IMG/VR virus record: IMGVR_UViG_3300034072_000926
Span: 186,001-250,000 of that record
Length of the DNA stretch: 64,000 nt
Reading direction: 5' to 3' (one strand)
Of this stretch, positions 8,786 to 38,792 are shown one piece after another. Position 1 is the stretch's first letter. Each line of letters starts with the position of its first letter. The notes below the pieces were generated by a model that had not been told where the DNA came from, did no database searches, and saw nothing but the letters and a program-made list of their open reading frames with translations. The position numbers and the translations under genes are program-made.

Positions 8786-11700
8786 TGGCCAAGAAAAATA
8801 ATCGTAGCCCCTTCGCATTCACACCGATTGTCCTAGATCAGGATAGTCATGAGAAGCGTCGTATTGTCAAGCAGCTTCCTGCAGTCCATCAGACTGAGAC
8901 TCTGCAGAAGTTCTTTGGCGCGACCGCTGATCATCTATTCGATCCAGGCAAGGGTCGTGCGATCAATGGTTACGTGGGTCAGAAGCCACTTTGGTATGAT
9001 CCTGACCAGGACTATTACCTGGAGGAGAACACTAGCGAGCGCACCTTCTATCAGCTAGAAGCATCGATGGTTAGCAAGGACACTGAGGGCGAACTCTCGG
9101 ATCTTCTTCCTTATCCTGACCTTATCAATCAGCTTCGTTTCCAGGGCGCCTTGACGAACAATCACAATCGTTTGTTCTCGCAGGACTATTACACCTGGTG
9201 TCCTCCGATTGATCTGGACAAGATTGTCAACTTCCGTCAGTATGTCTGGCTTCCTGTAGCGGGACTATCGCCGACTAGCACTTTCGAGGATGACCAGAGC
9301 GATGGTTGGATTCTTGAGGATGGAACCCCTGCAACTATAAGGGGTCCATGGACTGGTCTGAGCAAGTATATTGGCGACTTTGGTGGAAACCCAACTGGTG
9401 CTCAGGTCGTTAGCAAGACCTTTACCCTCAACAGTTCTGCGACTTCGGCACAGATTGAGTTTGACTTCATCAAGCTAAACTCTTGGGACAGCGTTCCTAA
9501 TATGTATCAAGCACCTCAAGCTTATGGTCCTGAGAGCATCTTCGTCCATCTAAATGATGAGTTTGCATTCTCATTCACTCCAGTTGACATTGGTGGTAAT
9601 GGCGGTGCAAGCTTGGGTTCGGGATCCTTTGTGGTCGATGGTCTAACTGGTACCTACAATGTGACCTCGCCAGGCGCTGATGCTAATTTGGACACGAACA
9701 ACCCAGACTCTCAGCAATTCACTGATCGCGTTTATCGTGTGACTATGACCGTGCTTGGAACTGGGGCAACTCTCAAGCTAGGTTTCGGATCCAACACTGA
9801 TGAGCCTTGGCAGAACGAATCCTTTGGATTGGATAATATCCGTCTATCGCAGGTGTCTACTGCGGCCGTGATCGTCAATGGCCCAACTCAGACTTATAAG
9901 AGTCAGGGCAATACCTCAGTTTACAATCTGCCAGGATATGGCACTGGTGCGGATGCTGAACTACAGGGTCTCTATGATATTGACATCCTGACCTCTGGTT
10001 TGATCCATGCCGAGGTCGATGGTGTTTCTCGTCCATTCACTTATGTAACTGGTGAGGACAAAATCACCTTTGCTCAGCGTCCTGCTTTTGATGCTGAGAT
10101 TTCGATCTCAGTCTACAGCGACCTTGAGAACAACGCAATTGGTCTTCCAAGCACTAATGTCAAGGCATTCGGTGGAACTCAGCTATCAAGTGGCATGAGG
10201 ATCATTGTACGTCTCGACAAGAACAGTGACTTTAAGAACAATCAGATTTACATCGTTGAAGGTGTTGGTAGGTCGATCTTCCTAATCAAGGAAGAGGACA
10301 ATGGTGCCAGCGACACCCCTGACTATATGGTCATGGAACGTGGATCTTCTGATCGTAACGAATGGTCAACCGGTAACCGCTGGTTCCACGTAGATACCCT
10401 GCCAGAAAGCCTGGATCCTGATTATGTTCTGAGGCAGCGAGCAAATCGTCCAATCATCGAATTCAATCGCGGTCTAGAGCTTTACAACTATGGCTCTACC
10501 CGTCGTTTCGATGTAGACATTGTGGTTGAGAACATCGAAGATCTCAACGGCTACATGAATCAGAATCCAACTTCGATCACATTGGACGGTGTTACGGTTG
10601 TTACCCGTGGAACCAATATGATCAGCATGACTGCGGTCGATCCAACCACTGGTGTGACCTATGGTGATCGCACCAGCATCCGTATCATGGTTCGCAACAC
10701 TGTAAATGAACTCTTGAACAATAACATCCTAGTCCTTGTGAACCAGGGCGGCATTCTGAAACTGATCCTAGAGACTGATGGCGACAACCCAAGTGGTCAG
10801 CCAATCTATGGCGAAGTCTTCAAGGTCAAGCTTGGTTCCTATGCGAGCAAGAACCTACATTGGGATGGTGCTTCTTGGATTGTTGGTCAGAATAAGACCA
10901 AGGTCAATCAGGCTCCGTTGTTTGAACTTTATGACCTGAACGGCAACAGCCTCAGGGATGATGGTATCTATCCGAACAGCACCTTCAAGGGTTCGAAATT
11001 GTTCAACTACAAGGTTGACACAACTGGCACACGAGTAGCAGATGCTGCTCTTGGTATTGCACTTGTTCACGACAACAAGGGTCAGATTCAGTTTGAGAAT
11101 TTCCTCCACACTGAAGCTTACCAGTATGTTGTGGGCGGTAGGTTCCTAGACATCACTGGATTCTACTTCCATAGGTCAGGCGAGCAATTCAGCAATGACT
11201 GGTATAAAGGTCCATCCCGCACCCGTCAGTTCATGATTGACCGCTACGTGAGCGATGGTCGAACCAAGCTCTTTGCTTTCAGTCAGAATGCAGAAGAACT
11301 GTATGTTTCCCTTGGTCGTGTGAATGAGAGCAAGTCTTTCGAGCGCACTGATCTAGTAGAAGACACTGACTATATCAGGATGGGTCGTCAGATCATGATC
11401 CTGAATATCAAGCTTGGCGACGTGATCGAGATCCGTTCGTTCAGTTCTGCAAATCCTCCCGTTGATGCCACTGGTCATTATGAGATTCCTCTGAACCTTC
11501 AGGCAAACCCTGATAATGACGAAGTGACCACTTTGACCAAGGGCGACTTCTATGATCACTTCAGTGAGATCATGAAGAAGCAAGCAGGCTTTGATGGTGC
11601 TGAATATGCTCTAAACAACTATCGTGATACTGCTAAGGCTATGAACCTCGGCACACATATCATTCAGCACTCGGCTGGTCTATTGAAGACCATGCTTCTG

Positions 11701-14700
11701 GCTAGCAGTCAGAATCTTGATCTTTCCGCCTCGATCCGTTTTGCTGATTCCGAATATAGCAGGTTCAAGGCTAAGTTCCAGCAGAAGATTGTCAGCTACG
11801 TCAATCAAAACCGTCTCACCAATGCTACTTCGTATGACACTTGGATCAACACAGCTCTTGAAGAGATCAACAAGGGTAAAACAAAGCTCTTCCCATTCTA
11901 CCTCAGTGGTATGGCAAAGAACGAGTCGAATCTATTGCCAACTTTCATTCCACCGACTCCTAGCTTCCTCGGCGTGCATCCCCTGTATGCCCCTGAGATT
12001 GTCTCTGACGAGGTCTCGGACGAGGATGGCAACACAGTCACTGTCTGGTATGTAAGGGGACATGACGGGTCTCTAACCCTGGGTGAGAACGAGATTAGCG
12101 CTCGTGTCTTGATGGCACTCGAGGAACGCATCTTCAACAGCATTCCTGCTTCGATCCGTATGCGCGAACGTCCTGTTTGTGATCCATTGCTTGCTTATGG
12201 TGACCAATTCCGTTCCGCTGATTACACCTATGACGAGTATCTTCAGATCCTTCGTCCTTCGTTTGAACGTTGGGCAATTGCAAATCGTCTAGATGTAAGG
12301 ACGAACGAATACTATGACAGTGATGACCTATGGACTTGGAATTGGTCTCAGATCCTAACCTCTGATGGTCAGAAGGTTCCAGGTCACTGGCGCGGGATCT
12401 ACGAGAAGTTCTTTGGAACTCAGCGTCCTGACATAATGCCTTGGGAAAGCCTTGGTTTCTCGATAAAGCCCGATTGGTGGGATGATCGCTACGGCAGTGC
12501 TCCTTACACAAGCGAGAACTTGGTTCTTTGGAATGACCTTGAGAATGGTTATATCCACAGCGGTCCACGTCAGGGCTTCAATGCTCACTTGGCTCGTCCA
12601 GGTCTATCACAGCATATCCCTGTTGACCTTCGTGGTCGTCTACGTCACCCAGGTCCACGCTGGAGGCCATCTGATACTGGTCCAAATCTAGACCAGTCTT
12701 GGACCGAAAGCCAGTATGTTGAATGGGAAGACACTAGCGCAGATGATGTGGTTCTAGGCTGTGGAATCTTGCCGACCCTTCCGCTAGTCTCTGATCGTAA
12801 GGCTGATTGGAACTATGGCGACATGGGCCCAACTGAACAGAACTGGAGGCGTTCAAGCACCTTCATGTTTGCCGCTGCTACTGCGAGCTATCTCATGAAG
12901 CCAGCTGCTTTCGTCGAACTTGGTTGGAATACTCAAGACATTGAACTGTTCTTTGCCGGTTCGGTCAATGAGCAGTGGATGAACCAGGATACAATGGGTC
13001 GCCCGAGCAACAGCGAACTACAAGTTCACGGCGAAGTCTTGGATGATCTCAGCCTTGTGACCAAGGTCGGTATTCAGCAGTGGGTTAGCGATTATTTGGC
13101 AAACCGCAATTCGGAGATTAATTCGAATCTAGCTGAAAAGGTTCGTGGTTTGGGATCGCAGCTCTCCTATAAGGTAGGTGGGTTCTCGGACGCAACGACT
13201 CTCATCACAGTTAGCGATGCATTTGGTCGTATTCCAAGCGAAGACGTCACGATCTCAAGCTACAGATCACCAAGCATCCGCGAGGAAACCTATAGCGGTC
13301 TAGCAATTGAGTATAAGTCGAATGGTTATGAGATTTACGGCTATGATACCCTGAATCCATATTTCTATACCATCCCTGCTGATAAGAACGGCAGCAAGAT
13401 CTCCGTTGGTAGCGGCATTAAGGCATCTAACCCTACTCCACTTTGGAGGGGCGCGACCTATTATACCGTGAACATCGTTGTGAAGCATGAGGACAACTTC
13501 TACCGCGCACTAAAGACCCACACAAGCTCTACGTTCTTCGAACCATCTTACTGGACTCAGGTATCTCGTCCGCAGTATGCAGACGGTGGCGCGCTTGTAT
13601 GGTATCTTGGTCAGCCAGTATCTCCGGTAATTGAGAAGGTTGCGTATGGCACTATCCTTAAGACTCCGCAGCAGGTCGCAGATTTTGTCAATGGCTACAA
13701 CCGCTACCTCGAGTCGAGGGGTTGGAAGTTTGACTCGTTGAATGATGATCAGGATGATATCCGCGATTGGAGGTCTGCACTTACAAGTTTCATCACTTGG
13801 AGCAGTCAGACTGATCGAGAGGAAGGCGACTTCCTCTCACTTAGCCCAAGTTCTAAGCTGATTCAGTATTCGACTGATCACGGCACTATTCAGCCGGTTG
13901 AACAGATCATCAATGGTCTCTACGCAATCGTGAACCAGAATGGTCAGCCAATTGATCCGAAGGATACTAGGGTCGTTCGTAACGATGGCAGCATCTCGAT
14001 CTACTGCGATTCGACAACTAGCGGTGTCTTCGGTCTGCGACTCTACGTGAGCGAGATTGAACATGTTCTTGTGTTCAACAATAAGACGATATTCGGCGAT
14101 ACCATTTATTCGCCGCTGCTCAACATCAAGCAGCCTCGTATCCGTCTTCAGGGCTTCAAGACTGTTGGTTGGAAGGGTCGTGTTGATGCACCTGGCTTCA
14201 TTGTAACTGGCGACACTTTGACTCCAAACTTCGAGCGTGCTGCGGATGACTTCCGTCGTTTCTTCGAAATTGAGTCGATGGAGAACAAGTCCCTACAGGA
14301 TCGCGCCCGTGCAAACTTCGGCTATGAGGAACGTGAATACCTCAACAATCTGCTCTTGACCTCAACTAACCAGTTTGAGTTCTATCAGGGTATGATTCAG
14401 CAGAAGGGTTCGCCAACCTCAATGCGTCGTCTCCTTCGCTCCAACTTCATTCGCCACAACAAGGGTTTGAAGCTGTTTGAGGAATGGGCATTCCGAGTTG
14501 GCGACTACGGCGGACAAGAAGTTACGCCGCAGCTGGATATCCAGATCCGTCAGAGCGAATTCAAGAACAACCCACAGTTGATCAAATTCACTAATGCTTC
14601 TGAGGCAAATACCTACGGTGTCATCAATGTCGTTGACACTAAGAATGCTGATGGCTCCTTGAATGATCTAGATGATCGTTGGAACTGGCGTCCAGATATC

Positions 14701-17700
14701 GCGGATATCAATTGGCCAACCAAGGACTTTGTTGCTAACGCGACCACTCCAGAAACTGCTGGCCCGGTCAACCTAGATGAAGTTCGCTTCACTGTTGCGA
14801 CCAATGAAGAGTTTGATGACTTTTATGGTTCGCTTTTGGATCAGGACGAAGTAATCAATGATCGTGACCGTGTTTGGGTGTATGGCATTGGTTCAGGTAG
14901 TGCATCGACTTCGTGGATGACCTACAAGTTCAATTCGACTGGCTTCAATATCGTCGATGTTGCTGCTCCTACCTTTGAGGGTCAGGGTTCGATTGTTCAG
15001 CTTGATAAGAATCTGAATGGCTTCGATGGATCTAATGATCCATGGACCAAACCATTCTATCTCAGCGCCGATATTGACCTGAATGAATATGACGACAATG
15101 GTTTTAGGATCTCGGGCGAGCGTCTTGTTCTCAAGAACATTGAGAACACTGATCTTAACCCACGCATGACCTACGTTCCAGCAACTAGAAATAAGGCAAA
15201 GGCTACACTTGAAACCACTGATCAGGCTGTTTTGATGGCATTCATGCCTCAAGCAGGACAAATGCTGAAGAGCATCACGGTCATTGTGGACGAAGCCTTC
15301 CCAAGTGATGCAACTCTTGAGATTGGTCATTCTGAAATTCATGACTTCTTCCTACCGGCTGATATGATTAATCTTTCGGTTACAGGAACTTACGAGATCA
15401 GCTCGCTCAATAACCCTAACTTCCCTTGGAACACTTCCTTGGCCGGCGGTGCTACCTATATGACAGCTGACTTGGTTTCGGCATCGACCTATGGTAGCCT
15501 GCGTATTGAAGTTGCCTATTATTACACCAAGGGCGTTGAGCTTTTGGAGAATCTCAATGGTAGTTTGGTTCCAAGCTTTGTCAATGTCGATGGCGGCACT
15601 GGTGAATTCTATACTTGGTTGAAGACTCGCTATCCAAACCTCGCCAGCGTTCCAACCACTGCTGGCATTTGGGACGATGGTGATATTGTTGAAGTAGACT
15701 CAGGTCCAGAAGATGGTCCAGATGATGGTCGTTGGTCAACTTATAAGATGATTGGAGGTTCTTGGACCGAGATTCGTCGTCAGAACCGCAAAATCAATAG
15801 CGATCTACTGACCAACGCGGCAATCTTCAACTCGACAGAAAACAAGCTCAAGTTGGTTCTTCAGCTCTACGATCCACTCAAGGGATTCATTCCTGGCACG
15901 GCTGATCGCGAACTGGAATACAAGACAAAGGCTGACCCTGCAATCTACAATGATGGTTTGATGGTGTGGGGCAAGGAACAAGTCGGCAAGCTGTGGTGGA
16001 ATCTGTCTACAACTCGTTACCTAGATTATGAGATCTATGATGATCTTTCCAATGGTGTGAACTATCGTTGGAAGAACTGGGGTCGTATTGCTCCTAATAC
16101 GAGCATTGACATTTATGAGTGGACTTGTAGTCCAGTGACTCCAAACTCCTGGTCGGCATATGTGGAGAGTAAGGCAAATCTGAAGATTGACAACAAGCCA
16201 TCGGGCGAAGTTGAAGAGACTGCACCATACATCATCGATGTTGAATGGAATGATGAAATTCAGGCTGAAGAAACTGTCTATTACTTCTGGGTTAAGAACC
16301 CAACTGTCGTTCCGGGCATTCCAAGCCGCAAGCTTTCTGCACGTCAGGTCAGCAATATCATCAGCAATCCAAGCGCACAGGACATTCCTTACTTCGCAGT
16401 CATCGATACCAATAAGGTTGTTGTTGGTGGTATCAGGCAGTTCCTAAACGAAACAGATACCGTGTTGAAGATCAAGTGGAACTTGGATGCAGACATTCAC
16501 AACAATCACCATAAGCAGTGGATGATTCTTCGTGAAGAGGACGAACGCAACACCATCAATGACGTTCTGTGGAACAAGATGCGTGACTCGGTTGTTGGCT
16601 GGGACGCAACGCAGGCGTATGTGCCGGACACTAAGCTACCAAAGGCCCAGCAGGTCGGTGCGCTAGTCCGTCCTCGCCAGTCTTGGTTCCCGACTGATGC
16701 AACTGCAACTGGCCAGCGTCCAAGCCGCGGTGCTCGCGAAGCATTCGTAGATGTCATGAATGACATCTTGTCGGCTGCTCCATTCACTGAGACTATGCCA
16801 AATTGGGAGAATGTATTTGCATCCGGCGAAGCATTGCCAACTGAAGACCGCTACATCACTACCGCTCTTGACTTGACCGACCTTGCCAACTTGCTACCTG
16901 CAAGCCGCAATATGGTTCAGCCAGGTGAATGTGTTCTCATTGAGAATACTGTTGATGCAGCTGGTTTCTGGACTCTCTGGAAGCTAGTTGAGATTTCGGG
17001 TCAGAGGACTTTCATCCTTGAAGACTTCCAAAAGTGGAGGATGCAAGAAGGTGAACTATGGAACCTAGCTGACTGGTATGCTGAGGATTGGTCTGCAAAG
17101 AACTTCCCTAACTATCGCTTCGCTACTGAGGATGATCGTAAGGCTGCTGGTAACCTCGACGTTACCCTGCTGAAGGGCACCTTGGTTCAGGTTGACCACA
17201 GTGATACCGCAAATCCACAGTGGACTTGGGATGTCTATACCTCGACAACCAAATATCAGGTCGCTAAGGCAAAGAGCACAATGAAGCTCAGCGATGCGTT
17301 CTATGATGCAAGCCGTGTCGAGTTTGGTCCTAGGGAAGTCTCTGCAATCCTCAATGCAAGCGAGGCAACTCGTATCACTCCGGCGAGGATTCAGGAACTA
17401 GCTGATCTGATCAACTATCGTGATGGTAGCCGTGAAATTGAATACATCCTGAACACTATTAAGTCGGATGTCTTTGATGTTCTACAGAAGAACAAGCTGT
17501 TCTTCGGTATGGTCAAGAGTGCGTTCAAGCAGAGCCAGGTCATCGACTGGGCATTTAAGACGTCCTTCCTCTACCTCGGCGGCTATTCGGAAACTCTACG
17601 TCAGAGCCCGGTGGCTTTCAAGGATCAGATTGACAACGTGATTGCATACTTGGAAGAGGTCAAGCCATACCACGTTAAGATTCGTGAATATGTGCGTCGC

Positions 17701-19335
17701 CTCTCTTATGGACCCGACGTTGCTGATTTGGCTATGACTGACTTTGATAAGCCAGTCTACCCAGACAGTGGTAGCTACCGAGTATTGAATCCAAACAATG
17801 CTGCGGATCAGAACATCCTAGGTCTAAACCGTCCTTGGAAGGATTGGTATGAAAACTTCCAGAAGCCAGTTCAGGAACTAGCTGATTGGAACCTAGAATG
17901 GAATGGCGTCCGTAAGATGAAGGTCAAGATGAAGTTTGACCGTATCGCTTGTGGAACTGTTTCGGGTTGGGATACTTTCCCTTGGGATCCAGCACTCTTG
18001 GTCTATAGCCAGATTGGTGGTGAGACTCAGAGCCTCAGCACTTTGAATGCTATGTATCGTAATAAGAATACTGGCGGCGATCCTGAGTTCTATCGTGACC
18101 AGACTGTAGAAACGATTGAGGATCGTAACTACTTGGTTCGTAAGGGTATCGTGACCGAGGATCGTTCGGGAACCATCGTAACTGTCCTAACAACTGGCGA
18201 ACACTTCATGTGGACCGGTGAGGCTTGGGCTAAGTTCGAGGCAATTGGTTGGGATCAGGGTCCAGACATGGGTGCAGTTACCCGTGTCGAGGAATCGTAT
18301 TATCCACTGCCTGGTATGACCCGTGCAGATGATGCAGGCTTGATTGCAGGATGTGACTTTGACGGCACTGTTATCTCGAGCAGCTTTGTCCAGGATGAAT
18401 GGGATATCTTCGAATGGGATTCTACTGGATATAGCCAGGGTATGCGTGAACATATCGGCGTTGATGTTGACAAGATTGACGGTAACACCACTGCCTCGGA
18501 TGAGAATGATCCTGCGAACATTAAAATCTCTGGTAATCAGTTTGCTCAGCCACATCGTGATTCCGGACGTCCGCACGAACTGGTAAGCATTCGTGGCATT
18601 GAGAGCATTGTGATCAACGTGACACAGAATGGTGTTCCATTGCGTAAGAGCTTCATGAACGCACAGAACAAGTGGCAGGACACTGTGATTGGAAACAGTG
18701 GTATCTCGTTTGTTGATTGGGATCAAATCAATAAGCAGGTAACGCTGACCGTTCCGGGTTGGAATGAAGATGGAAATGGATTCACGGCAATCCATGACCC
18801 TCAGAATCCATCTAATGGTTTCATCCGAGATATCATGTTGTCGAAGGGCTACAGGTCAACCAGCAATGTGGATATGACTTCTGCAGGTGTCAAGACCTTC
18901 AAGCTTCGTGACATGGCCGACATTGATAGCTTGCCAGCTGGTCTGATGGGCGACAATGTTAAGGTTGCAATCGTGAATACTAGGGATCCAAGCAAGCGCG
19001 CAATTGGTGTTCTCTCGAACAGTAAGGGTAACGAAGTTGGATCTTGGAATGGTTCGATCACGGTAGATTTCACCGATGGCTTCGTGGACATTGGTTCGGG
19101 TAAGAGTTGGAACATCATCCCTGTTGATATGTTCAACGAACCAGGTATCGTCTGGATCGACAATGCTCGTTTCACCTACACTGAAATCGAACGCACTGGT
19201 AATACGGCAATCCTCAAGAACGCAAGGCTATCGGCAAGCTCGCTAGAATGTCTGAATATTGCTGAGGATAATAGCGTGACTCTAAAGAGCACGGGTCCGG
19301 TTTTTGATGGTTCTAAACATCGTCAAAACGCCTAA
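8785..19335 (+). CDS. Very large (3516 aa) virion structural/baseplate protein
   Basis: Uninterrupted 10.5-kb ORF coupled to the gp6-like gene. 'YLEEVKPYHVKIRE' near the C-terminus. Internal CBM-like modules. Confidence 0.75.
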   Translation: MAKKNNRSPFAFTPIVLDQDSHEKRRIVKQLPAVHQTETLQKFFGATADHLFDPGKGRAINGYVGQKPLWYDPDQDYYLEENTSERTFYQLEASMVSKDTEGELSDLLPYPDLINQLRFQGALTNNHNRLFSQDYYTWCPPIDLDKIVNFRQYVWLPVAGLSPTSTFEDDQSDGWILEDGTPATIRGPWTGLSKYIGDFGGNPTGAQVVSKTFTLNSSATSAQIEFDFIKLNSWDSVPNMYQAPQAYGPESIFVHLNDEFAFSFTPVDIGGNGGASLGSGSFVVDGLTGTYNVTSPGADANLDTNNPDSQQFTDRVYRVTMTVLGTGATLKLGFGSNTDEPWQNESFGLDNIRLSQVSTAAVIVNGPTQTYKSQGNTSVYNLPGYGTGADAELQGLYDIDILTSGLIHAEVDGVSRPFTYVTGEDKITFAQRPAFDAEISISVYSDLENNAIGLPSTNVKAFGGTQLSSGMRIIVRLDKNSDFKNNQIYIVEGVGRSIFLIKEEDNGASDTPDYMVMERGSSDRNEWSTGNRWFHVDTLPESLDPDYVLRQRANRPIIEFNRGLELYNYGSTRRFDVDIVVENIEDLNGYMNQNPTSITLDGVTVVTRGTNMISMTAVDPTTGVTYGDRTSIRIMVRNTVNELLNNNILVLVNQGGILKLILETDGDNPSGQPIYGEVFKVKLGSYASKNLHWDGASWIVGQNKTKVNQAPLFELYDLNGNSLRDDGIYPNSTFKGSKLFNYKVDTTGTRVADAALGIALVHDNKGQIQFENFLHTEAYQYVVGGRFLDITGFYFHRSGEQFSNDWYKGPSRTRQFMIDRYVSDGRTKLFAFSQNAEELYVSLGRVNESKSFERTDLVEDTDYIRMGRQIMILNIKLGDVIEIRSFSSANPPVDATGHYEIPLNLQANPDNDEVTTLTKGDFYDHFSEIMKKQAGFDGAEYALNNYRDTAKAMNLGTHIIQHSAGLLKTMLLASSQNLDLSASIRFADSEYSRFKAKFQQKIVSYVNQNRLTNATSYDTWINTALEEINKGKTKLFPFYLSGMAKNESNLLPTFIPPTPSFLGVHPLYAPEIVSDEVSDEDGNTVTVWYVRGHDGSLTLGENEISARVLMALEERIFNSIPASIRMRERPVCDPLLAYGDQFRSADYTYDEYLQILRPSFERWAIANRLDVRTNEYYDSDDLWTWNWSQILTSDGQKVPGHWRGIYEKFFGTQRPDIMPWESLGFSIKPDWWDDRYGSAPYTSENLVLWNDLENGYIHSGPRQGFNAHLARPGLSQHIPVDLRGRLRHPGPRWRPSDTGPNLDQSWTESQYVEWEDTSADDVVLGCGILPTLPLVSDRKADWNYGDMGPTEQNWRRSSTFMFAAATASYLMKPAAFVELGWNTQDIELFFAGSVNEQWMNQDTMGRPSNSELQVHGEVLDDLSLVTKVGIQQWVSDYLANRNSEINSNLAEKVRGLGSQLSYKVGGFSDATTLITVSDAFGRIPSEDVTISSYRSPSIREETYSGLAIEYKSNGYEIYGYDTLNPYFYTIPADKNGSKISVGSGIKASNPTPLWRGATYYTVNIVVKHEDNFYRALKTHTSSTFFEPSYWTQVSRPQYADGGALVWYLGQPVSPVIEKVAYGTILKTPQQVADFVNGYNRYLESRGWKFDSLNDDQDDIRDWRSALTSFITWSSQTDREEGDFLSLSPSSKLIQYSTDHGTIQPVEQIINGLYAIVNQNGQPIDPKDTRVVRNDGSISIYCDSTTSGVFGLRLYVSEIEHVLVFNNKTIFGDTIYSPLLNIKQPRIRLQGFKTVGWKGRVDAPGFIVTGDTLTPNFERAADDFRRFFEIESMENKSLQDRARANFGYEEREYLNNLLLTSTNQFEFYQGMIQQKGSPTSMRRLLRSNFIRHNKGLKLFEEWAFRVGDYGGQEVTPQLDIQIRQSEFKNNPQLIKFTNASEANTYGVINVVDTKNADGSLNDLDDRWNWRPDIADINWPTKDFVANATTPETAGPVNLDEVRFTVATNEEFDDFYGSLLDQDEVINDRDRVWVYGIGSGSASTSWMTYKFNSTGFNIVDVAAPTFEGQGSIVQLDKNLNGFDGSNDPWTKPFYLSADIDLNEYDDNGFRISGERLVLKNIENTDLNPRMTYVPATRNKAKATLETTDQAVLMAFMPQAGQMLKSITVIVDEAFPSDATLEIGHSEIHDFFLPADMINLSVTGTYEISSLNNPNFPWNTSLAGGATYMTADLVSASTYGSLRIEVAYYYTKGVELLENLNGSLVPSFVNVDGGTGEFYTWLKTRYPNLASVPTTAGIWDDGDIVEVDSGPEDGPDDGRWSTYKMIGGSWTEIRRQNRKINSDLLTNAAIFNSTENKLKLVLQLYDPLKGFIPGTADRELEYKTKADPAIYNDGLMVWGKEQVGKLWWNLSTTRYLDYEIYDDLSNGVNYRWKNWGRIAPNTSIDIYEWTCSPVTPNSWSAYVESKANLKIDNKPSGEVEETAPYIIDVEWNDEIQAEETVYYFWVKNPTVVPGIPSRKLSARQVSNIISNPSAQDIPYFAVIDTNKVVVGGIRQFLNETDTVLKIKWNLDADIHNNHHKQWMILREEDERNTINDVLWNKMRDSVVGWDATQAYVPDTKLPKAQQVGALVRPRQSWFPTDATATGQRPSRGAREAFVDVMNDILSAAPFTETMPNWENVFASGEALPTEDRYITTALDLTDLANLLPASRNMVQPGECVLIENTVDAAGFWTLWKLVEISGQRTFILEDFQKWRMQEGELWNLADWYAEDWSAKNFPNYRFATEDDRKAAGNLDVTLLKGTLVQVDHSDTANPQWTWDVYTSTTKYQVAKAKSTMKLSDAFYDASRVEFGPREVSAILNASEATRITPARIQELADLINYRDGSREIEYILNTIKSDVFDVLQKNKLFFGMVKSAFKQSQVIDWAFKTSFLYLGGYSETLRQSPVAFKDQIDNVIAYLEEVKPYHVKIREYVRRLSYGPDVADLAMTDFDKPVYPDSGSYRVLNPNNAADQNILGLNRPWKDWYENFQKPVQELADWNLEWNGVRKMKVKMKFDRIACGTVSGWDTFPWDPALLVYSQIGGETQSLSTLNAMYRNKNTGGDPEFYRDQTVETIEDRNYLVRKGIVTEDRSGTIVTVLTTGEHFMWTGEAWAKFEAIGWDQGPDMGAVTRVEESYYPLPGMTRADDAGLIAGCDFDGTVISSSFVQDEWDIFEWDSTGYSQGMREHIGVDVDKIDGNTTASDENDPANIKISGNQFAQPHRDSGRPHELVSIRGIESIVINVTQNGVPLRKSFMNAQNKWQDTVIGNSGISFVDWDQINKQVTLTVPGWNEDGNGFTAIHDPQNPSNGFIRDIMLSKGYRSTSNVDMTSAGVKTFKLRDMADIDSLPAGLMGDNVKVAIVNTRDPSKRAIGVLSNSKGNEVGSWNGSITVDFTDGFVDIGSGKSWNIIPVDMFNEPGIVWIDNARFTYTEIERTGNTAILKNARLSASSLECLNIAEDNSVTLKSTGPVFDGSKHRQNA

Positions 19336-29762: not shown

Positions 29763-29832
29763 AACTCAGTTTACTTGGTATTTGACTCGGGTGTCAATTT
29801 TGTTGCATAATAGGTTAACATTGAGGATCCTT

Positions 29833-31420: not shown

Positions 31421-31879
31421 TCACTCCACTGCGCTGAAACGCTTGGTGATCGCATGTGCCTGTTCGCGGGTGCAAGGGCCAATACCCAGGGCAGTCACGA
31501 TGGGCGAACCATCGAACTCGGTGCCGGGGATAATGTGGTTCTTGTCCACGATGAGGGAAGTGATCAGACCAGCAGCCTGGGCCTCTTCGTAAGCGCGCTG
31601 GATAGCGGCTTCGTTCTTGGCCTTGAGGATGACTTGGGTGCCGATGAAGTCCGGGCCCTGGTAAACACGCAGGAGTTCCGGTTCGCGCCGACTAGCGAGA
31701 AGCACACAATTCTTGGCCGCATGACAAGCCTGGCTTGCCAGCTTACCGGGCTTCATAGCCAGGTCGCCTCGAATGATGCTATAGATGCGAAGCTTTTCAG
31801 AGGCAGCTTCGAAGGCCTCGTCGTCATTATCCGCTTCGTAGCGAGCAATGGCTTCCTACAAGAACGAGTTCGTCAGCAT
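31421..31879 (-). CDS. pth2: Peptidyl-tRNA hydrolase type 2 (Pth2) with in-frame amber codon at codon 8 (31856-31858)
   Basis: 'IIRGDLAMKPGKLASQACHAA...VILKA...LIVD...TALGIGP' is Pth2. The ORF-track start (31756) truncates the conserved first strand. The in-frame ATG at 31879 follows the RBS AGAAAGGA and reads MLTNSFL*EAIARYE. Confidence 0.8.
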
Positions 31880-31919
31880 TTGCAGTCCTTTCTATTTGCG
31901 TCCAACATCGGACGTCCTC

Positions 31920-31947
31920 AACATAAGACACTTTTAGGATGTGTCAA
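31920..31947 (-). promoter_or_regulatory. Sigma70-like promoter of pth2
   Basis: TTGACA-N16-TATGTT. Confidence 0.55.
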
Positions 31948-31961
31948 CACTTAAATTGAAA

Positions 31962-32300
31962 TTATTTTGCCTCGGTTTCTTTCAAGGCTTCAATCTCTTC
32001 CCTGGTGTAATATTTCGTCGTATCAGGGCTAGTACAACCATGTGGACTATGGTATTTCATTTTCCACATCAATGCACCTTTCTCAGTTGGAAAGATAACC
32101 TCCAATGCAGGACCTTCCCAACGTCCGCCCCAAGCCTCAATATCAGCAAGGACTTCTGGCTTTAGATCAGGTGTAAACTTATCAGCCCAGTGACCTATAA
32201 TCAAACCTTCTTTCCAGAGGTTGATCGTGCCATACCCGAAATGATGTTCCGTTGGTTCATCATCGTTTATGCCATTCCAGGTATAATAGGTCATCGCCAC
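31962..32300 (-). CDS. Small 'FKL-tail' family protein (divergent)
   Basis: FPTEKGALMWKMKY. Confidence 0.55.
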   Translation of the reverse strand: MAMTYYTWNGINDDEPTEHHFGYGTINLWKEGLIIGHWADKFTPDLKPEVLADIEAWGGRWEGPALEVIFPTEKGALMWKMKYHSPHGCTSPDTTKYYTREEIEALKETEAK

Positions 32301-32623
32301 CTCAGCTTAAACATCATCGCATCGCGCGAATGGCTAAACACCACACCGACACTATACGAGCAACCTGTCTCCCAGCCAACTTTCTTCCACTCGCCATGCT
32401 TGACATTTTCCTTACACCATTCCTCAACAGGAATGAATGTGGACCAGGAAAAGCCTAGCATCTTGACCAGATACCAGTTCGGGAACTTCTTATGGATTGA
32501 TTCGACGAAATCTCCGTCTTCCCATTCGTCTTCTTCGAATAGGTTTGAGGTCTCCACGTCTTCGGAAATTTGGCCATCGTGGTAACCGAGATCGTCCCAC
32601 AGCCAGGTAACATCATTATTCAT
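32291..32623 (-). CDS. Small 'FKL-tail' family protein
   Basis: VEEWCKEN...FSHSRDAMMFKLRWR; GGAGGA RBS. Confidence 0.65.
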   Translation of the reverse strand: MNNDVTWLWDDLGYHDGQISEDVETSNLFEEDEWEDGDFVESIHKKFPNWYLVKMLGFSWSTFIPVEEWCKENVKHGEWKKVGWETGCSYSVGVVFSHSRDAMMFKLRWR

Positions 32624-32705
32624 TATATCCTCCAGTCAGTAATGTTGTTGAAACATTCTGTGGAGGAGGGCCTCGTTGGACCTAGTGATGCTTATTCGTG
32701 TTCAT
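32616..32705 (-). promoter_or_regulatory. Leader ORF MNTNKHH*(TAG)VQRGPPPQ... with anti-SD hairpin; putative amber-responsive translational attenuator
   Basis: ATG lies 7 nt after the -10 box, with TAG at codon 8. The read-through frame ends at TAA overlapping the ATG at 32623. TCCTCCA pairs with the SD TGGAGGA. Confidence 0.55.
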
Positions 32706-32712
32706 GTAACTA

Positions 32713-32741
32713 CTTATAAGACACTAGGTCCGCAGAGTCAA
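32713..32741 (-). promoter_or_regulatory. Sigma70-like promoter (leaderless leader-ORF transcript)
   Basis: TTGACT-N17-TATAAG. Confidence 0.6.
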
Positions 32742-32743
32742 AA

Positions 32744-33187
32744 TTAAATCAGTTCCTGATCGGCCGCAGCATTCAGAATACCGCGATAGACCCGCATGTT
32801 GGGACGATACGGTCCACTGGCGCTGAAATAGCGCATATCGTCCCCGTTGAAGATCTTGTCCAACGCAGCAGCGACCGCAGCACTCCTGCACTGTCCCATG
32901 AGACAATGAACGTATAAGACGCTCACATCCTTCTCTACCATTTCGTGATAGAAATCCAGGACTTGCTTGGCATGATCATCATCGAACAGGATACGGGTTT
33001 CCTCTTCGGGTTCCCCGTTCTTATACTGATCAATGTCGTGGAACTGTAGGTTCAGCCTACCCATGAGGTATTCATTCTCATGGATAGTGGGAAACTCGCC
33101 CTTCTCACAGATGCTGACTACTGCCCAAGGCTTCTCGGGCGGATTGGCAACTTCCATGATGGCTCGGCTATATACTACAAACTTCAT
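32744..33187 (-). CDS. Protein-tyrosine/dual-specificity phosphatase-like protein
   Basis: Cx5R motif HCLMGQCRSAAVA, plus 'FHDID' and 'PNMRV'. Confidence 0.8.
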   Translation of the reverse strand: MKFVVYSRAIMEVANPPEKPWAVVSICEKGEFPTIHENEYLMGRLNLQFHDIDQYKNGEPEEETRILFDDDHAKQVLDFYHEMVEKDVSVLYVHCLMGQCRSAAVAAALDKIFNGDDMRYFSASGPYRPNMRVYRGILNAAADQELI

Positions 33188-33537
33188 GCACCAGTTTTAT
33201 TCTGTTCTGGAGCACCTGTCAACTTCTTAAAAGCTTCGACTTCCCTGTCGAGAATTTCGAGAGCAATAGGAATATCTGCGCCTGCAACTCGAATGTCGAA
33301 AAAGCCCCAATGACATTCATCGTCGCCGTCCGAATCGTAGCACTGATATTCAGTGCCGGTCTTCTCGTCGAGGAAATGGTTATCCAGAGAATACCAGAGA
33401 TCTTCATCAATAGCACCGACTGGAATTTTGATGCGACATGTGAGCTCGATGATAGGTTTCTCGGCATCATGCACGAAAATCCAATCGGTCGGGACAACCA
33501 GCTTAGAATCCCGAACCAAGATCGCAAAGATGCTCAT
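33184..33537 (-). CDS. Hypothetical acidic protein
   Basis: ORF with ATGA overlaps on both sides. Confidence 0.55.
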   Translation of the reverse strand: MSIFAILVRDSKLVVPTDWIFVHDAEKPIIELTCRIKIPVGAIDEDLWYSLDNHFLDEKTGTEYQCYDSDGDDECHWGFFDIRVAGADIPIALEILDREVEAFKKLTGAPEQNKTGA

Positions 33538-34334
33538 TCGTCACTGCCATTTGCGTGACGAGTGACATGCAGAGCGTTATCGGCCTGATACTTCTCGACC
33601 TGCTGCCAATTGTAGATGCAGCGATCCAGACCGATGGCAATCTCGAGCACAAGTGCGTCCTTCTCAACAAGACCTTTCTTGCTCTGGAACTTCAGCTTCT
33701 CAGGGAAATCAGTTCGCAGGCTGATGCTGCAAACTTCCATCCACTTGTCACCGTTCCAGACTTCAACGTCCATCGTCTTCAGCGAATAGGCCGGCAGACG
33801 ATCCGACTCAACAAGACGGGTCGGTAAATGAACCATAGAGGCGATCATCTTCCGAACGGGTTCGAGGATCGCAGCATGATAGTCGTTCGCTGTGTCTGCA
33901 CTGTAGATGCACTGGAACTCTTGCTGGTAGAACTCCTTAAGGCGCATGTGCTTGGTCGGCTGCACGATTTCCCGACGGAAGCTCTTACCCGCCTGCCAAA
34001 CCACAAAGGGCGGGGAAACGCCAAGATGGTTGTTGAGCAGGTATTGCGCGTAGGCATAGCTACCGGGAGTGGTTTCGGGTCGCAGCGTCAACGGCGCTTC
34101 GCCGGACATGGCCGGGACCTGCTGATCCCATACATCCTCAGATGTGTAGTTGACATTGAGTAGATCACGCGGAGTGAGTAACGGGGCCTCGACGAAATGG
34201 AACTTCCACTGCGGGTTCAAGGCCAGCAATGCGTTTTGAATGGTCCGAGCAAAATAGTCCCGGAAGGTTTCGCGAAGGCGGATCTCTTCCTCATTCCAGA
34301 AGACCAGACCATTGATGTTATAGGGATTCTGCAT
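33534..34334 (-). CDS. Class II aminoacyl-tRNA synthetase catalytic domain, GlyRS (alpha2-type)-like, lacking an anticodon-binding domain
   Basis: LRPETT, QAGKSFRRE (motif 2), RLKEFYQQEFQ, PAYS..TMDVE, WMEVCSISLRTDF, VLEIAIGLDR (motif 3). The protein ends about 25 aa after motif 3. Likely start MQNPYN at 34334. Confidence 0.75.
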   Translation of the reverse strand: MQNPYNINGLVFWNEEEIRLRETFRDYFARTIQNALLALNPQWKFHFVEAPLLTPRDLLNVNYTSEDVWDQQVPAMSGEAPLTLRPETTPGSYAYAQYLLNNHLGVSPPFVVWQAGKSFRREIVQPTKHMRLKEFYQQEFQCIYSADTANDYHAAILEPVRKMIASMVHLPTRLVESDRLPAYSLKTMDVEVWNGDKWMEVCSISLRTDFPEKLKFQSKKGLVEKDALVLEIAIGLDRCIYNWQQVEKYQADNALHVTRHANGSDE

Positions 34335-34342
34335 AATGGGCC

Positions 34343-34852
34343 TTACTGGTTGAGAATGAAGATGAAGGAAACAACTGCCATCATAACACCGCCCCAGAAG
34401 AATGGGCTCTTCAGCAGCGCGGGCTTGATATCTGGGATAGCGATGGGTTCTGGTTCCGGCCTCGGTTCCCGAACATTTCTGAGCCCGAGGAAGGCTTGCC
34501 ATTCCCATTCCGAAGAAGGCCGGTCATTGTTGTTCGTACTAGCCGCACCAGCATAGCCGATATACAGGCCTTCGCTGGCCGCCCATGTCCTCAGCTCTTC
34601 CCATACGGGCTGATATGCAGATTTCTCATCTTCCATATCCCATCGAGAACCATAGCAGGGCATTTCGAAGAGATGCCGGATAGCCTTTGGGGCAGTCACT
34701 GGCGCATATTCACTGCCGTGCTTTACTGCCTCTTGTAGGGCTTCGAGCAAGGTGGACTTTACGAAGAACCGAAGGAGGTCTGCATTCTCCTTCAGTTCAT
34801 TATGGATGGCTTCGCGCTTGGTCTTGCGAAGATCATCTGCGAGCGTTGCCAT
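34343..34852 (-). CDS. Hypothetical protein with C-terminal transmembrane anchor
   Basis: Hydrophobic C-terminal 'PFFWGGVMMAVVSFIFIL'. Confidence 0.6.
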   Translation of the reverse strand: MATLADDLRKTKREAIHNELKENADLLRFFVKSTLLEALQEAVKHGSEYAPVTAPKAIRHLFEMPCYGSRWDMEDEKSAYQPVWEELRTWAASEGLYIGYAGAASTNNNDRPSSEWEWQAFLGLRNVREPRPEPEPIAIPDIKPALLKSPFFWGGVMMAVVSFIFILNQ

Positions 34853-36171
34853 TAGTCTTCAATCCTCAAGTGATCTGCCTTGTATTCAGCTTCGAAGACA
34901 TCCTTATAGGTTTTGATGATTAGAATCAATACCGCAGGATACAGGAAGGTGGACAGAAGGACATTGCCGACCACAATAGCCTCGAAGAGTTCCAGGTATT
35001 CAAAGTCCCTGGGAATCATATGCAACATGAGCAGCGAGAACGCACCCTTCACACCGGCAGCAGTCAATACCTTCCACCAATGCAGCGGGATGGTCACAAC
35101 TTTATCAGTCCGCTGACTCATCCAAGCAAACCCGCCCAACATGACCATTCGAATGATCGTCGAACCTACGAATACTGCCATGATCTCGCCCCAATACTTC
35201 ACAAGCAACTGGAGATTGATCAGATTAGCCATCGTAATGAACAAGACCGTCGAGGCAATGATTGCAATGAACTGGATGTTACCGATGACGACTTGATAGG
35301 CATAGGAATCCTTGATCATGTTGTCGAAACGAGGAATGATCTTCCCAATGGTCCGACCACGTTCGCCAGTGTCCTCAACAGCATTCTCGAGTTCACTCGA
35401 TAGTCGCTTGGTGATGATATTGTTGGCGAAGAGGATCGCAACGATAACAGCAAAGATGCCAGAAGCATGATAGTGTTCAGCAATCGCGAACGCGCCTAGG
35501 GCCATGAGCAGGACAATCATCGTCTCAGTCATTGCATCGTGGATATAACGCAGAGCAATAAGACCCACGTAACCAACGACCAGACCAATGCCAAGTGCGC
35601 CGACGACCATCTTGACCGCGTAGAGGGTGGGGTTATCCGCTACATGCTCGGGGCCATGACCCATATAGACTAGCGCGATACTGAATACAATCAGGGCACT
35701 TGCGTCGTTGAACAAACTCTCACCCTCTGCGAGGACTTTGAGATTGTGAGGCAAATGCGACCGACCGAACACCGCAGAGACCGAAACTGGATCCGTTGCA
35801 AGGATCATACAGAACAATGCTGCGACCGCCGGGGCCGTCAGATGGTAGTCAGGTAGAATGTGTCGATTGACCATGATTGCAAGGCCGACCGAAAGGACGA
35901 TCATAATGCCTGCAATGTAGAACAAGCTTAGGGCATTGCGCTTGAGCTCATCCCAGCGGAGCATCATAGCGTCAACGCATATCAGGATGGGAAGCATGAG
36001 GAAGACCAGATGGTCAAATGTTTGATCACTAATCTCGATGGGACGATGCCCGGAAAGTGAAACCAGAACCACCGAGGCGATAATTGTTATCGGGGTGGGA
36101 ACGCCTAGCTTTTGCTGGACGAAAAGAGCCGTAGCGGCTATGAGCACAACAAAGATAGCTAGTTCTAGCAT
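34852..36171 (-). CDS. CPA1-family Na+(K+)/H+ antiporter (NhaP-like)
   Basis: Many hydrophobic helices; ATDPVSV and EGESLFNDA motifs. Confidence 0.9.
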   Translation of the reverse strand: MLELAIFVVLIAATALFVQQKLGVPTPITIIASVVLVSLSGHRPIEISDQTFDHLVFLMLPILICVDAMMLRWDELKRNALSLFYIAGIMIVLSVGLAIMVNRHILPDYHLTAPAVAALFCMILATDPVSVSAVFGRSHLPHNLKVLAEGESLFNDASALIVFSIALVYMGHGPEHVADNPTLYAVKMVVGALGIGLVVGYVGLIALRYIHDAMTETMIVLLMALGAFAIAEHYHASGIFAVIVAILFANNIITKRLSSELENAVEDTGERGRTIGKIIPRFDNMIKDSYAYQVVIGNIQFIAIIASTVLFITMANLINLQLLVKYWGEIMAVFVGSTIIRMVMLGGFAWMSQRTDKVVTIPLHWWKVLTAAGVKGAFSLLMLHMIPRDFEYLELFEAIVVGNVLLSTFLYPAVLILIIKTYKDVFEAEYKADHLRIED

Positions 36172-36209
36172 CTACTTTCCTATTCTGTTTGACCTCATAA
36201 AATGTTGAG

Positions 36210-36282
36210 CGCGCCTAGCGAGGCTCGAACTCGCGACCCGCGGATTTAGAGTCCGCTGCTCTACCAACTGAGCTATAAGCGC
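36210..36282 (-). tRNA. Amber-suppressor tRNA (anticodon CUA), tRNA-Gly-like body, no encoded CCA
   Basis: Minus strand GCGCTTA-TA-GCTC-AGTTGGTA-GAGC-A-GCGGA-CTCTAAA-TCCGC-GGGTC-GCGAG-TTCGAGC-CTCGC-TAGGCGC-G gives a complete cloverleaf with a 7-nt loop CT-CTA-AA. Confidence 0.92.
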
Positions 36283-36293
36283 ATGTAACCTTT

Positions 36294-36752
36294 TTAGGAC
36301 TTATTCTCCAGCCTGTCAAGACGTTCCATGATTTCTCGGAGAAGTTCTACCTGCTCCCTGGATTGATTCTTGAGAAGTTCCTGTTCCTCGTGCGTGAATG
36401 CATCGCTGTTGACGATCAGATGTGCGGCAAACTTAGCCGTGATGATCGGTGCGATGATAAAGGTGCAAACGTGCATGAACACGCCTGCAAGAAACTTGCT
36501 CCAGGGATGCGTGGGAAACATATCCCCGTATCCAACAGTGGTCGCTGTCACGGTCGCCCACCAAAAGCTGTCAGTGATGTCCTTGCCTTCGATGAAGCTG
36601 AACATAAGAGCAGCTATGGTCATGATCAGGCCATATGCAATTGCAAGGCTTATGACCCGATTGAACAGTTTCTGCATCAGCGTCAATTCTTGACCAGCCC
36701 CGGCTGCGGCGGTCCACAAATCACTACCGGCTTGTTCGATCTTTCTACGCAT
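36294..36752 (-). CDS. Two-TM potassium channel (KcsA-like)
   Basis: Selectivity filter TATTVGYGD flanked by two TM helices. Confidence 0.9.
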   Translation of the reverse strand: MRRKIEQAGSDLWTAAAGAGQELTLMQKLFNRVISLAIAYGLIMTIAALMFSFIEGKDITDSFWWATVTATTVGYGDMFPTHPWSKFLAGVFMHVCTFIIAPIITAKFAAHLIVNSDAFTHEEQELLKNQSREQVELLREIMERLDRLENKS

Positions 36753-38764: not shown

Positions 38765-38792
38765 AGCTTACAGGAAAAAGGTTAGCTGTCAA
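38765..38792 (-). promoter_or_regulatory. Sigma70-like promoter, leaderless cysS transcript
   Basis: TTGACA-N16-TAAGCT, with the ATG 6 nt downstream. Confidence 0.5.

Follow-up and report, generated by a model that had tools for sequence, protein, structure and literature searches.

Known leader-peptide and stop-codon systems

Three kinds of described system come close to the leader reported here. First of all, RAPP-class arrest-peptide leaders, such as SecM-secA, ApdA/ApdP-secDF, ApcA-yidC2 and the Streptomyces RAPP/RGPP uORFs, encode R-[A/G]-P-P in an upstream ORF, and the stalled ribosome sits on the 5' arm of a hairpin that hides the Shine-Dalgarno (SD) sequence of the next gene. RAPP and RGPP are the strongest, context-tolerant, EF-P-resistant arrest motifs, RSPP and RDPP are partly permissive, and ApdP comes from Sinorhizobium (PMC12992588, PMC10951233). 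Second, crAss-like and Lak-type phages using genetic code 15 or 4 encode suppressor tRNAs that decode in-frame stops across many, mostly late, genes, and this has been proposed to time gene expression. Third, in leader-peptide attenuation (trp, his, tna), the progress of a ribosome along a short leader ORF decides whether a downstream structure forms, and an engineered tna leader with an inserted TAG requires a suppressor tRNA for downstream expression (Liu, Qi, Yanofsky and Arkin 2011, as reviewed in PMC6412442).

We describe here a leader in a jumbo phage that combines elements of these systems. A leaderless mini-ORF ending in an amber stop is followed, in the read-through frame, by a putative Arg-Gly-Pro-Pro arrest motif, and precedes a gene whose SD is sequestered in a hairpin. 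In contrast to the RAPP-class leaders, the motif lies behind an in-frame amber codon, and is thus translated only after suppression; the nascent chain at the motif is only about 13 residues (MNTNKHH-X-VQRGP), with no hydrophobic, signal or membrane segment, so that force-dependent release is not expected; and the downstream gene is a phage gene of unknown function rather than sec or yidC. In contrast to the recoded phages, the genome uses the standard code, with TAG ending 73 of 430 ORFs of 150 aa or more (17%) and no excess of TAG-interrupted frames over TAA or TGA in crude scans, only a leader peptide and the start of pth2 carry the in-frame stop, and any effect on the downstream gene is indirect, through RNA structure. 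In contrast to the attenuators, no U-run follows the hairpin, so the proposed action is on translation initiation rather than on termination. We found no published natural precedent and no paper describing this element, although the literature searched was incomplete, and an Rfam search of positions 31700-32900 gave no match at E up to 1.

Sequence and structure of the leader

The window analysed is a stretch of 64,000 nucleotides (positions 186,001 to 250,000 of IMG/VR record IMGVR_UViG_3300034072_000926), and belongs to a 465-kb jumbo phage that carries 58 tRNAs, two with anticodon CUA, each behind its own promoter. The relevant features, all on the minus strand, are as follows.

32736..32741 (-): -35 box TTGACT of the leader promoter
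32722..32731 (-): 5' arm (GGACCTAGTG) of a perfect 10-bp inverted repeat, inside the 17-nt promoter spacer
32713..32718 (-): -10 box TATAAG, 7 nt before the mini-ORF ATG, which implies a leaderless transcript
32682..32705 (-): leaderless mini-ORF MNTNKHH, ATG (32705-32703) AAC ACG AAT AAG CAT CAC TAG (32684-32682)
32678..32687 (-): 3' arm (CACTAGGTCC) of the inverted repeat, containing the amber codon
32669..32682 (-): small hairpin GGUC/GGCC that starts at the G of UAG
32616..32681 (-): read-through frame VQRGPPPQNVSTTLLTGGYNE, stopping at TAA 32618-32616, 2 nt after the ATG (32623-32621) of the downstream gene
32664..32675 (-): codons CGA GGC CCT CCT (RGPP), a putative ribosome-arrest motif; at arrest the P site would hold CCT 32669-32667 and the A site CCT 32666-32664
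32661..32667 (-): anti-SD arm TCCTCCA of the main hairpin
32641..32657 (-): inner stem AATGTT (32657-32652) / AACATT (32646-32641) and its loop
32628..32634 (-): 3' arm TGGAGGA, the SD of the downstream gene
32291..32623 (-): downstream gene ("gene X", 110 aa), with an acidic N-terminus and a conserved C-terminal alpha/beta domain, function unknown
31421..31879 (-): pth2 (peptidyl-tRNA hydrolase), ATG 31879, with an in-frame amber at codon 8 (TAG 31858-31856; MLTNSFL)
36209..36282 (-): tRNA with anticodon CUA (amber suppressor), with its own TTGACA promoter; the second tRNA-CUA lies outside the window

Every sequence statement of the original prediction, namely the promoter, the amber-terminated mini-ORF, the read-through frame, the SD-sequestering hairpin and the early amber of pth2, is confirmed. 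RNAfold pairs TCCTCCA with TGGAGGA and AATGTT with AACATT, and for the 113-nt leader dG is -25.7 kcal/mol and z is -2.0, with 4 of 200 shuffles folding as well. The single locus would not be significant on its own, since an open 21-codon frame occurs in about 58% of shuffles and promoter-proximal mini-ORFs ending in TAG are not enriched genome-wide.

The transcription start is inferred from the promoter sequence. A consensus sigma-70 scan does not call this promoter because it demands T at the last -10 position, whereas the -10 box of these leaders ends in G or A. TATAAG and TACGAG-type -10 boxes do, however, recur at plausible promoters throughout this genome, and the motif TTGAC[AT]-N16-18-TAnnn[TG] precedes many of its genes as well as all homologous leaders. 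About half of 83 promoter-plus-ATG hits in this genome open ORFs of 75 codons or more, so leaderless translation is routine here. Contigs from near relatives cover the leader, but RNA contigs aligned to the window do not.

The 10-bp inverted repeat is unique in the genome, and equivalent repeats with different sequences occur in two of the homologous leaders described below (L052 and L053). Spacer-to-downstream inverted repeats are a general feature of this phage's promoters (18 of 129 have 8 or more exact bases), and many promoter spacers carry anti-SD sequences; at this locus, the spacer arm pairs with the amber region of the mini-ORF and not with the SD, and the SD hairpin lies wholly inside the local transcript. 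It could be argued that the mini-ORF is not translated and that the conserved features are nucleic-acid signals, the inverted repeat acting as an operator or as a hairpin in read-through transcripts and the SD hairpin as a thermometer or protein-binding site. The repeat does contain the TAG, and there are no expression data. However, only the triplet TAG is common to all clades while its flanks differ, it is always in frame with an ATG at the predicted start, the frame behind it is selectively open, and the inverted repeat is absent or shifted in many relatives. We thus regard this explanation as very unlikely.

Gene X has 104 homologues, mostly on jumbo-phage-sized contigs. Profile searches against Pfam, PHROGs and NCBIfam gave no match, and one JGI label on a homologue ("YggL/DUF469") was not reproduced by Pfam. 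The AlphaFold model has a mean pLDDT of 74, and Foldseek against PDB and AFDB clusters gave no hit with TM of 0.5 or more on both sides.

Conservation among related leaders

What puts the architecture well beyond chance is its conservation in 25 homologous leaders (numbered here with the prefix L) from the cultured phages Phosso and Atu_ph07 and from IMG/VR, JGI, ENA and Logan contigs, whose sequences have otherwise diverged. Relatives share ancestry, so the counts that follow are not independent. All 23 leaders from the amber-type phages have a promoter-proximal mini-ORF of 2-10 codons ending in TAG, and in 21 of 25 leaders the ATG lies 5-7 nt after the -10 box (TATAAG or TAAATA). Over the first 15 amber leaders, the read-through frame has 1 stop, against 19 and 20 in the other two frames. 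In all 23 it stays open across the 5' arm of the hairpin, and in 18 it ends within 8 nt of the start of gene X, often in an ATGA overlap, or runs in frame with it.

Every leader folds into a hairpin between the stop and the gene. The 3' arm is the SD region in 20 leaders, in all of which region -16..-4 of gene X is paired, and a similar small stem follows the TAG in the closest relatives. RNAalifold on the 12 closest leaders gave only a 6-bp consensus stem with little covariation, and support for the hairpin comes instead from the different arm sequences between clades. In L003, L046, L056 and L057 the hairpin is followed by a U-run, and these terminator-type relatives are closer to attenuators.

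The original prediction, which noted the resemblance of RGPP to arrest motifs, played down its Pro codons as a possible by-product of the anti-SD. The motif is, in fact, the most conserved peptide feature: RGPP, RAPP, RSPP, RDPP or RPPP appears in 17 of the 18 amber-type leaders with an SD-sequestering hairpin. The second Pro codon lies -15 to +5 nt from the first base of the anti-SD arm in all 20 SD-type leaders, and within 2 nt in 12 of them. The background P(R[AGSD] given PP) is 0.017 in this genome, with only 1 such motif in about 142,000 aa of predicted proteins, and no convincing R[AGSD]PP motif was found behind another TAG. The anti-SD itself forces Pro-Pro in one of three frames, so part of the motif is structurally explained; the Arg and the small residue before Pro-Pro, on the other hand, are not dictated by it, and in L050 RSPP lies just 5' of, not inside, the predicted anti-SD arm. 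Five relatives (L003, L046, L054, L056 and L057) lack the motif, and four of them use terminator-like hairpins, so arrest cannot be universal in the family.

These data also bear on a second alternative, amber-gated translational coupling without arrest, in which read-through ribosomes simply unwind the hairpin and then terminate at or on the start codon of gene X and reinitiate there, or make an N-terminally extended protein where the frames coincide, the RxPP motif being a by-product of the anti-SD and of shared ancestry. In its favour, the read-through frame ends in an ATGA overlap or within 8 nt of the start in 13 leaders and is in frame with it in 5, and in the four terminator-like leaders without RxPP, close ribosome-polymerase coupling would be enough. 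However, in L047 and L064-L067 the read-through frame stops inside the hairpin, 17-31 nt before the start, yet L064-L067 keep RAPP. Together with the position of RSPP in L050 and the low background of R[AGSD] before PP, this makes coupling without arrest unlikely, although it remains the strongest of the alternatives.

Co-variation with the suppressor tRNA and the neighbouring pth2

The identity of the stop co-varies with the suppressor anticodon of the phage. Syntenic tRNA-CUA genes were found in 13 of the 15 amber-type loci examined. Atu_ph07, on the other hand, has 33 tRNAs, one UCA and no CUA (PMC6102473), and in its clade both the gene X leader and pth2 use TGA instead of TAG. The nearest phage tRNAs to the tRNA-CUA are ambiguous as to its identity (Ser, Asn, Leu, Lys), and the discriminator appears, by our reading of the alignment, to be G in the four close orthologues.

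Suppression is used next door. The amber of pth2 is in frame with the PTH2 domain, and in 11 relatives pth2 has an SD, an ATG, 3-7 codons and an in-frame stop, followed by 32-50 conserved codons with no start codon, so suppression must occur in these phages. A wider regulon was not apparent: three crude scans for ATG-N18-TAG arrangements found no excess of TAG over TAA or TGA, although our gene map was rough and missed small genes, including gene X itself, so that sensitivity was low. One candidate is the helicase at genome 111198-112691, with VNRFSRL-TAG plus 28 in-frame codons.

A third alternative is that the mini-ORF senses termination or peptidyl-tRNA turnover rather than the suppressor. 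Ribosomes would always stop at UAG, and the output would depend on RF1 activity or on drop-off of the short peptidyl-tRNA, as with lambda bar minigenes, which would tie the leader to Pth activity and make the phage tRNA-CUA irrelevant to it. The ORFs are indeed very short and lie next to a peptidyl-tRNA hydrolase gene, and the spacing from the stop to the hairpin is 12-13 nt in the window, Phosso and Atu_ph07 clades. However, this spacing is 38 nt or more in L003 and other relatives, and the model does not explain why the frame beyond the stop stays open and encodes an arrest motif positioned on the anti-SD, or why the stop switches to TGA exactly in the clade whose suppressor is tRNA-UCA. We therefore consider it improbable.

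A proposed mechanism

The comparative evidence supports the core of the original prediction, namely that read-through of an amber-terminated leaderless uORF opens an SD-sequestering hairpin and turns on the downstream gene. Stalling at the UAG itself, which was offered there as an alternative to read-through, is not supported, since the UAG lies 12 nt or more 5' of the hairpin and up to about 40 nt or more in relatives. Arrest after read-through is probably the step that holds the hairpin open.

We propose that the element is a cis-acting translational switch whose input is the phage's own amber-suppressor tRNA. Host-type RNA polymerase would start at or within a nucleotide or two of the ATG at 32705, giving a leaderless mRNA on which a ribosome translates MNTNKHH and meets UAG. 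Without charged tRNA-CUA, RF1 would release the ribosome 12 nt before the hairpin, the anti-SD arm would stay paired with the SD, and gene X would not be translated. With charged tRNA-CUA, the ribosome would read on through V-Q-R-G-P-P and arrest; the second Pro codon lies within the anti-SD arm, so the stalled ribosome would hold the hairpin open and leave the SD free for a second ribosome. Ribosomes that escape would run to the TAA that overlaps the start region, which could add termination-reinitiation coupling. Since pth2 is gated by its own in-frame amber, the suppressor tRNA would act as a trans-acting licence or timer for a small translation-maintenance regulon. We hold this model with moderate confidence: it is supported by comparison only, with no experiment, known RAPP peptides are longer, and arrest by a chain of only 13 residues is untested.

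A more far-reaching reading is possible but more tentative. Standard-code jumbo phages may use a suppressor tRNA as a dedicated trans-acting regulatory RNA, whereby decoding of one amber (or opal) codon unmasks an ultra-short RGPP/RAPP arrest peptide in a leaderless mRNA, the arrest opens an SD hairpin or, in relatives, overrides a terminator, and the same tRNA licenses an amber-interrupted peptidyl-tRNA hydrolase. Such a tRNA-sensing switch may report whether the phage's tRNA supply, processing and charging (possibly by the adjacent anticodon-blind class II synthetase core) are working, for example under host attack on tRNAs.

Implications

If correct, this would be a natural case in which an arrest peptide is switched by decoding of a stop codon rather than by secretion, a drug or a metabolite, a logic that until now existed only as a synthetic design, and the part is small enough to be useful as a suppressor-dependent genetic switch. 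It would extend RAPP/RGPP arrest to phages and to a nascent chain of about 13 residues on a leaderless mRNA; ApdP comes from within the host group (alpha-proteobacteria) of the cultured relatives. It would also explain why phages that keep the standard genetic code nevertheless carry nonsense-suppressor tRNAs. The authors of the Atu_ph07 study noted the tRNA-UCA but could name no target (PMC6102473), and this work names two concrete targets, the gene X leader and pth2.

Genomic context and the leader locus

The 64-kb window occupies positions 186001-250000 of a single 465,259-bp contig, which carries 58 tRNA genes, two of them with anticodon CUA. Its nearest cultured relatives are Sinorhizobium phage Phosso (469 kb) and Agrobacterium phage Atu_ph07 (490 kb); it is therefore a jumbo phage, and sequencing runs place it in soil or subsurface metagenomes. 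It uses the standard code, since TAG terminates 73 of 430 ORFs of 150 aa or more. A single ORF of 3516 codons is also found at window 8785-19335 (+).

The original prediction described a promoter-proximal, leaderless uORF with an amber at codon 8, followed by a hairpin that sequesters the SD of the next gene. These sequence features lie on the minus strand and are exactly as described, and we additionally found a perfect 10-bp inverted repeat that is unique in the genome. The features of the locus, all on the minus strand, are as follows.

32741-32736 (-), TTGACT, followed by 17 nt
32731-32722 (-), one arm of the 10-bp inverted repeat, in the promoter spacer
32718-32713 (-), TATAAG, followed by 7 nt
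32705-32682 (-), the mini-ORF from ATG to TAG, encoding MNTNKHH
32687-32678 (-), the other arm of the inverted repeat, covering the amber codon
32667-32661 (-), TCCTCCA, which pairs with the SD around an inner stem AATGTT/AACATT
32634-32628 (-), TGGAGGA, the SD
32618-32616 (-), TAA, which ends the read-through frame just after the ATG (32623) of a 110-aa ORF ('gene X')
31421-31879 (-), pth2 (peptidyl-tRNA hydrolase, Pfam PTH2), 800 bp downstream, with an SD-led ATG at 31879 and TAG at codon 8 (31858-31856), in frame with the PTH2 domain

The Pfam match of pth2 needs residues that lie before the first internal ATG; public annotations start the gene at the internal ATG. The inverted repeat could form only in read-through transcripts or as DNA, and equivalent repeats with different sequences occur in two of the homologous leaders described below, L052 (ACGTGTGGAT/ATCCACACGT) and L053 (GCGTTGGGC/GCCCAACGC). 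Taken alone, the locus is not statistically remarkable.

Conservation of the leader in related phages

We collected 25 homologous leaders upstream of homologues of gene X (labelled L003, L045 and so on when they come from contigs other than the cultured phages). They came from Phosso and Atu_ph07, IMG/VR, JGI metagenomes, and ENA, Logan and NCBI contigs reached through a protein search. Synteny is conserved, the order being K+ channel, tRNA-CUA, a class II aminoacyl-tRNA-synthetase-like core, a few small genes, gene X, sometimes a small gene, pth2, then a kinase-phosphatase-like gene and an HNH gene. In the window, a Na+/H+ exchanger family protein and a small K+ channel (Ion_trans_2), at 34852-36171 (-) and 36294-36752 (-), lie between the suppressor tRNA and the synthetase-like gene, and the channel is syntenic in relatives. 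Contigs from two other runs, one DNA and one metatranscriptome, join 31963 to 32291 with three other letters between; natural relatives therefore lack the 112-aa gene between gene X and the pth2 promoter. Gene X itself has 104 homologues, almost all on very large phage contigs, and searches gave it no family or fold assignment.

First of all, all 23 leaders of the amber type have a mini-ORF of 2-10 codons ending in TAG, examples being MNTNKHH, MNTNLHH, MKTNIHT, MKKILTHH, MNKKYTHL, MTYY, MTNR and ML, with a tRNA-CUA found in 13 of the 15 loci examined. Outside the TAG, the flanks differ between clades: CACTAGG, CTTGTAGC, TTAGAACC, CATGTAGA. Second, in 21 of 25 leaders the ATG is 5-7 nt after a TATAAG or TAAATA box that follows TTGAC by 17-18 nt, which predicts leaderless mRNAs. 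In fact, leaderless expression looks routine in this phage, as about half of 83 hits to TTGAC-N16-19-TAnnnN followed within 4-9 nt by ATG or GTG open ORFs of 75 codons or more, among them the CysRS (start near 38792, genome 224792), DnaJ-like and kinase-phosphatase-like (near 29797, genome 215797) genes. Many sigma-70-like promoters of this genome also carry, in the spacer between -35 and -10, a sequence complementary to the SD of the gene they drive, for example at genome 439954, 377981, 222801 (= window 36801) and 43615 (all -). Of 129 promoter-like sites, 18 have exact inverted repeats of 8-14 nt, against about 4.8 nt for shuffled spacers; only transcripts arriving from upstream could form that stem, much as appears to be the case for phage T4 genes e, soc and 49.

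Third, the frame behind the stop is kept open. For the first 15 amber leaders the read-through frame has 1 stop between the amber and the gene start, while the other two frames have 19 and 20. Over all 23, the frame always covers the 5' arm of the hairpin; it ends within 8 nt of the start codon in 13 leaders (ATGA overlap in 7), is in frame with the start codon in 5, and stops inside the hairpin, after the 5' arm, in 5.

Finally, every leader folds into a substantial hairpin between the stop and gene X, and in 20 leaders the 3' arm covers positions -16..-4 of gene X. The arm sequences differ between clades: TCCTCCA/TGGAGGA in the window, CTCAC/GTGAG in its main clade, GTTCTCC/GGAGAAC in the Phosso clade, CTCCT/AGGAG in L047 and CTCCAT/ATGGAG in the Atu_ph07 clade. 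Within the closest clade, on the other hand, covariation is weak, because the stem is simply conserved, and the element matches no Rfam family. In four distant relatives, L003 (2840-2880), L046 (3868-3905), and L056 and L057 (just before position 6001), the structure is a GC-rich stem followed by a U-run, an intrinsic-terminator look-alike, and the family therefore seems to have both translational and transcriptional versions. In L057 this structure abuts the annotated ATG, which has no SD. These four leaders suggest a transcription-attenuation version of the same switch, or an amber-interrupted longer gene X.

A putative arrest motif in the read-through peptide

In 17 of the 18 amber leaders with an SD hairpin, the read-through peptide carries R-[G/A/S/D/P]-P-P between 3 and 13 codons after the amber. 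The motif is RGPP in the window, L048 and L063; RAPP in L051-L053, L064-L067 and L069; RSPP in Phosso, L045, L068 and L050; RDPP in L071; and RPPP in L049. The second Pro codon, which is the A site in known RAPP arrests, lies between -15 and +5 nt from the first base of the anti-SD arm in all 20 SD-type leaders, and within 2 nt in 12 of them. The original prediction allowed that the Pro codons may simply be a by-product of the anti-SD. The anti-SD does explain Pro-Pro in one frame, but it does not explain the Arg and the small residue before it: in this genome P(R[AGSD] given PP) is 0.017 in six-frame translation, and our approximate proteome of about 142,000 aa has a single such motif. Furthermore, in L050 RSPP lies just 5' of the predicted anti-SD arm rather than inside it.

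RAPP and RGPP give the most robust arrest, tolerate varied N-terminal contexts and resist EF-P, whereas RSPP and RDPP are partly permissive, and RGPP is the most avoided tetrapeptide in many bacterial phyla (PMC12992588). ApdP comes from Sinorhizobium medicae (PMC10951233). In the window, a ribosome arrested with CCT 32669-32667 in the P site would have the anti-SD arm inside its mRNA channel, and the SD, which lies more than 30 nt downstream, would be free. Arrest by a nascent chain of only 13 residues is, however, unproven. The element is not a SecM/ApdP-type secretion monitor, because it has no signal segment and is not upstream of sec or yidC.

Link to the suppressor tRNA

A tRNA-CUA gene lies within 6 kb of gene X in 13 of the 15 amber-type loci for which flanks were at hand; the orthologues align, and their acceptor stems show compensatory changes. 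The phage itself has two different tRNA-CUA genes, at window 36209-36282 (-) and genome 441571-441647 (-), each directly behind its own TTGACA promoter. The one in the window has no encoded CCA end and the other has one, and the amino-acid identity of the two could not be assigned. Conserved in synteny close to the tRNA-CUA gene is a 324-aa class II aminoacyl-tRNA-synthetase catalytic core (window 33534-34508, -), annotated in Phosso as 'serine-tRNA synthetase'. It is nearest to GlyRS and HisRS but far below the family cut-offs, and it appears to lack an anticodon-binding domain, as inferred from its length (324 aa against about 450-480) and the extent of the matches. It is a candidate anticodon-blind charging enzyme for the suppressor.

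Atu_ph07, on the other hand, has 33 tRNAs, one with anticodon UCA (75 nt, not selenocysteine-like) and none with CUA (PMC6102473). In Atu_ph07 and its metagenomic relative L058, the stop 12 nt before the anti-SD is TGA, and read-through gives IVFKPP and then TAG sitting on the anti-SD, a Pro-Pro-stop arrangement. In pth2 the in-frame stop is TAG in nine relatives from the amber-type phages and TGA in the two Atu_ph07-clade genomes, and in every case it is followed by 32-50 conserved codons without any start codon. Suppression is thus evidently used by these phages, and the stop identity follows the suppressor.

The element is not part of genome-wide recoding. One further amber-gated leader is possible: upstream of a helicase-like gene (genome 111198-112691, -; judged from its motifs alone), an SD-led GTG opens VNRFSRL and then TAG at codon 8, and a strong hairpin and 28 stop-free codons follow, in frame with the SD-led ATG of the helicase, although this may be chance.

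Proposed mechanism

In the literature that we could search, we found no description of a natural suppressor-gated leader or arrest peptide. The closest precedent is synthetic, an amber codon inserted in the tna leader peptide (Liu et al. 2011, cited in PMC6412442). We regard the element as new in combining known kinds of control, an arrest-peptide leader and programmed read-through by a phage tRNA.

We propose that a leaderless mRNA is made and that the ribosome translates the mini-ORF. Without charged suppressor it terminates before the hairpin, and gene X stays silent; with suppressor it reads on, arrests at RGPP on the anti-SD arm, and exposes the SD. Ribosomes that escape may add coupling at the overlapping stop and start. 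These steps are inferred rather than demonstrated; all support is comparative, and the relatives share ancestry. Both tRNA-CUA genes and both regulated units have host-type promoters, and the arrangement therefore resembles a coherent feed-forward delay that also checks that the tRNA has been processed and charged.
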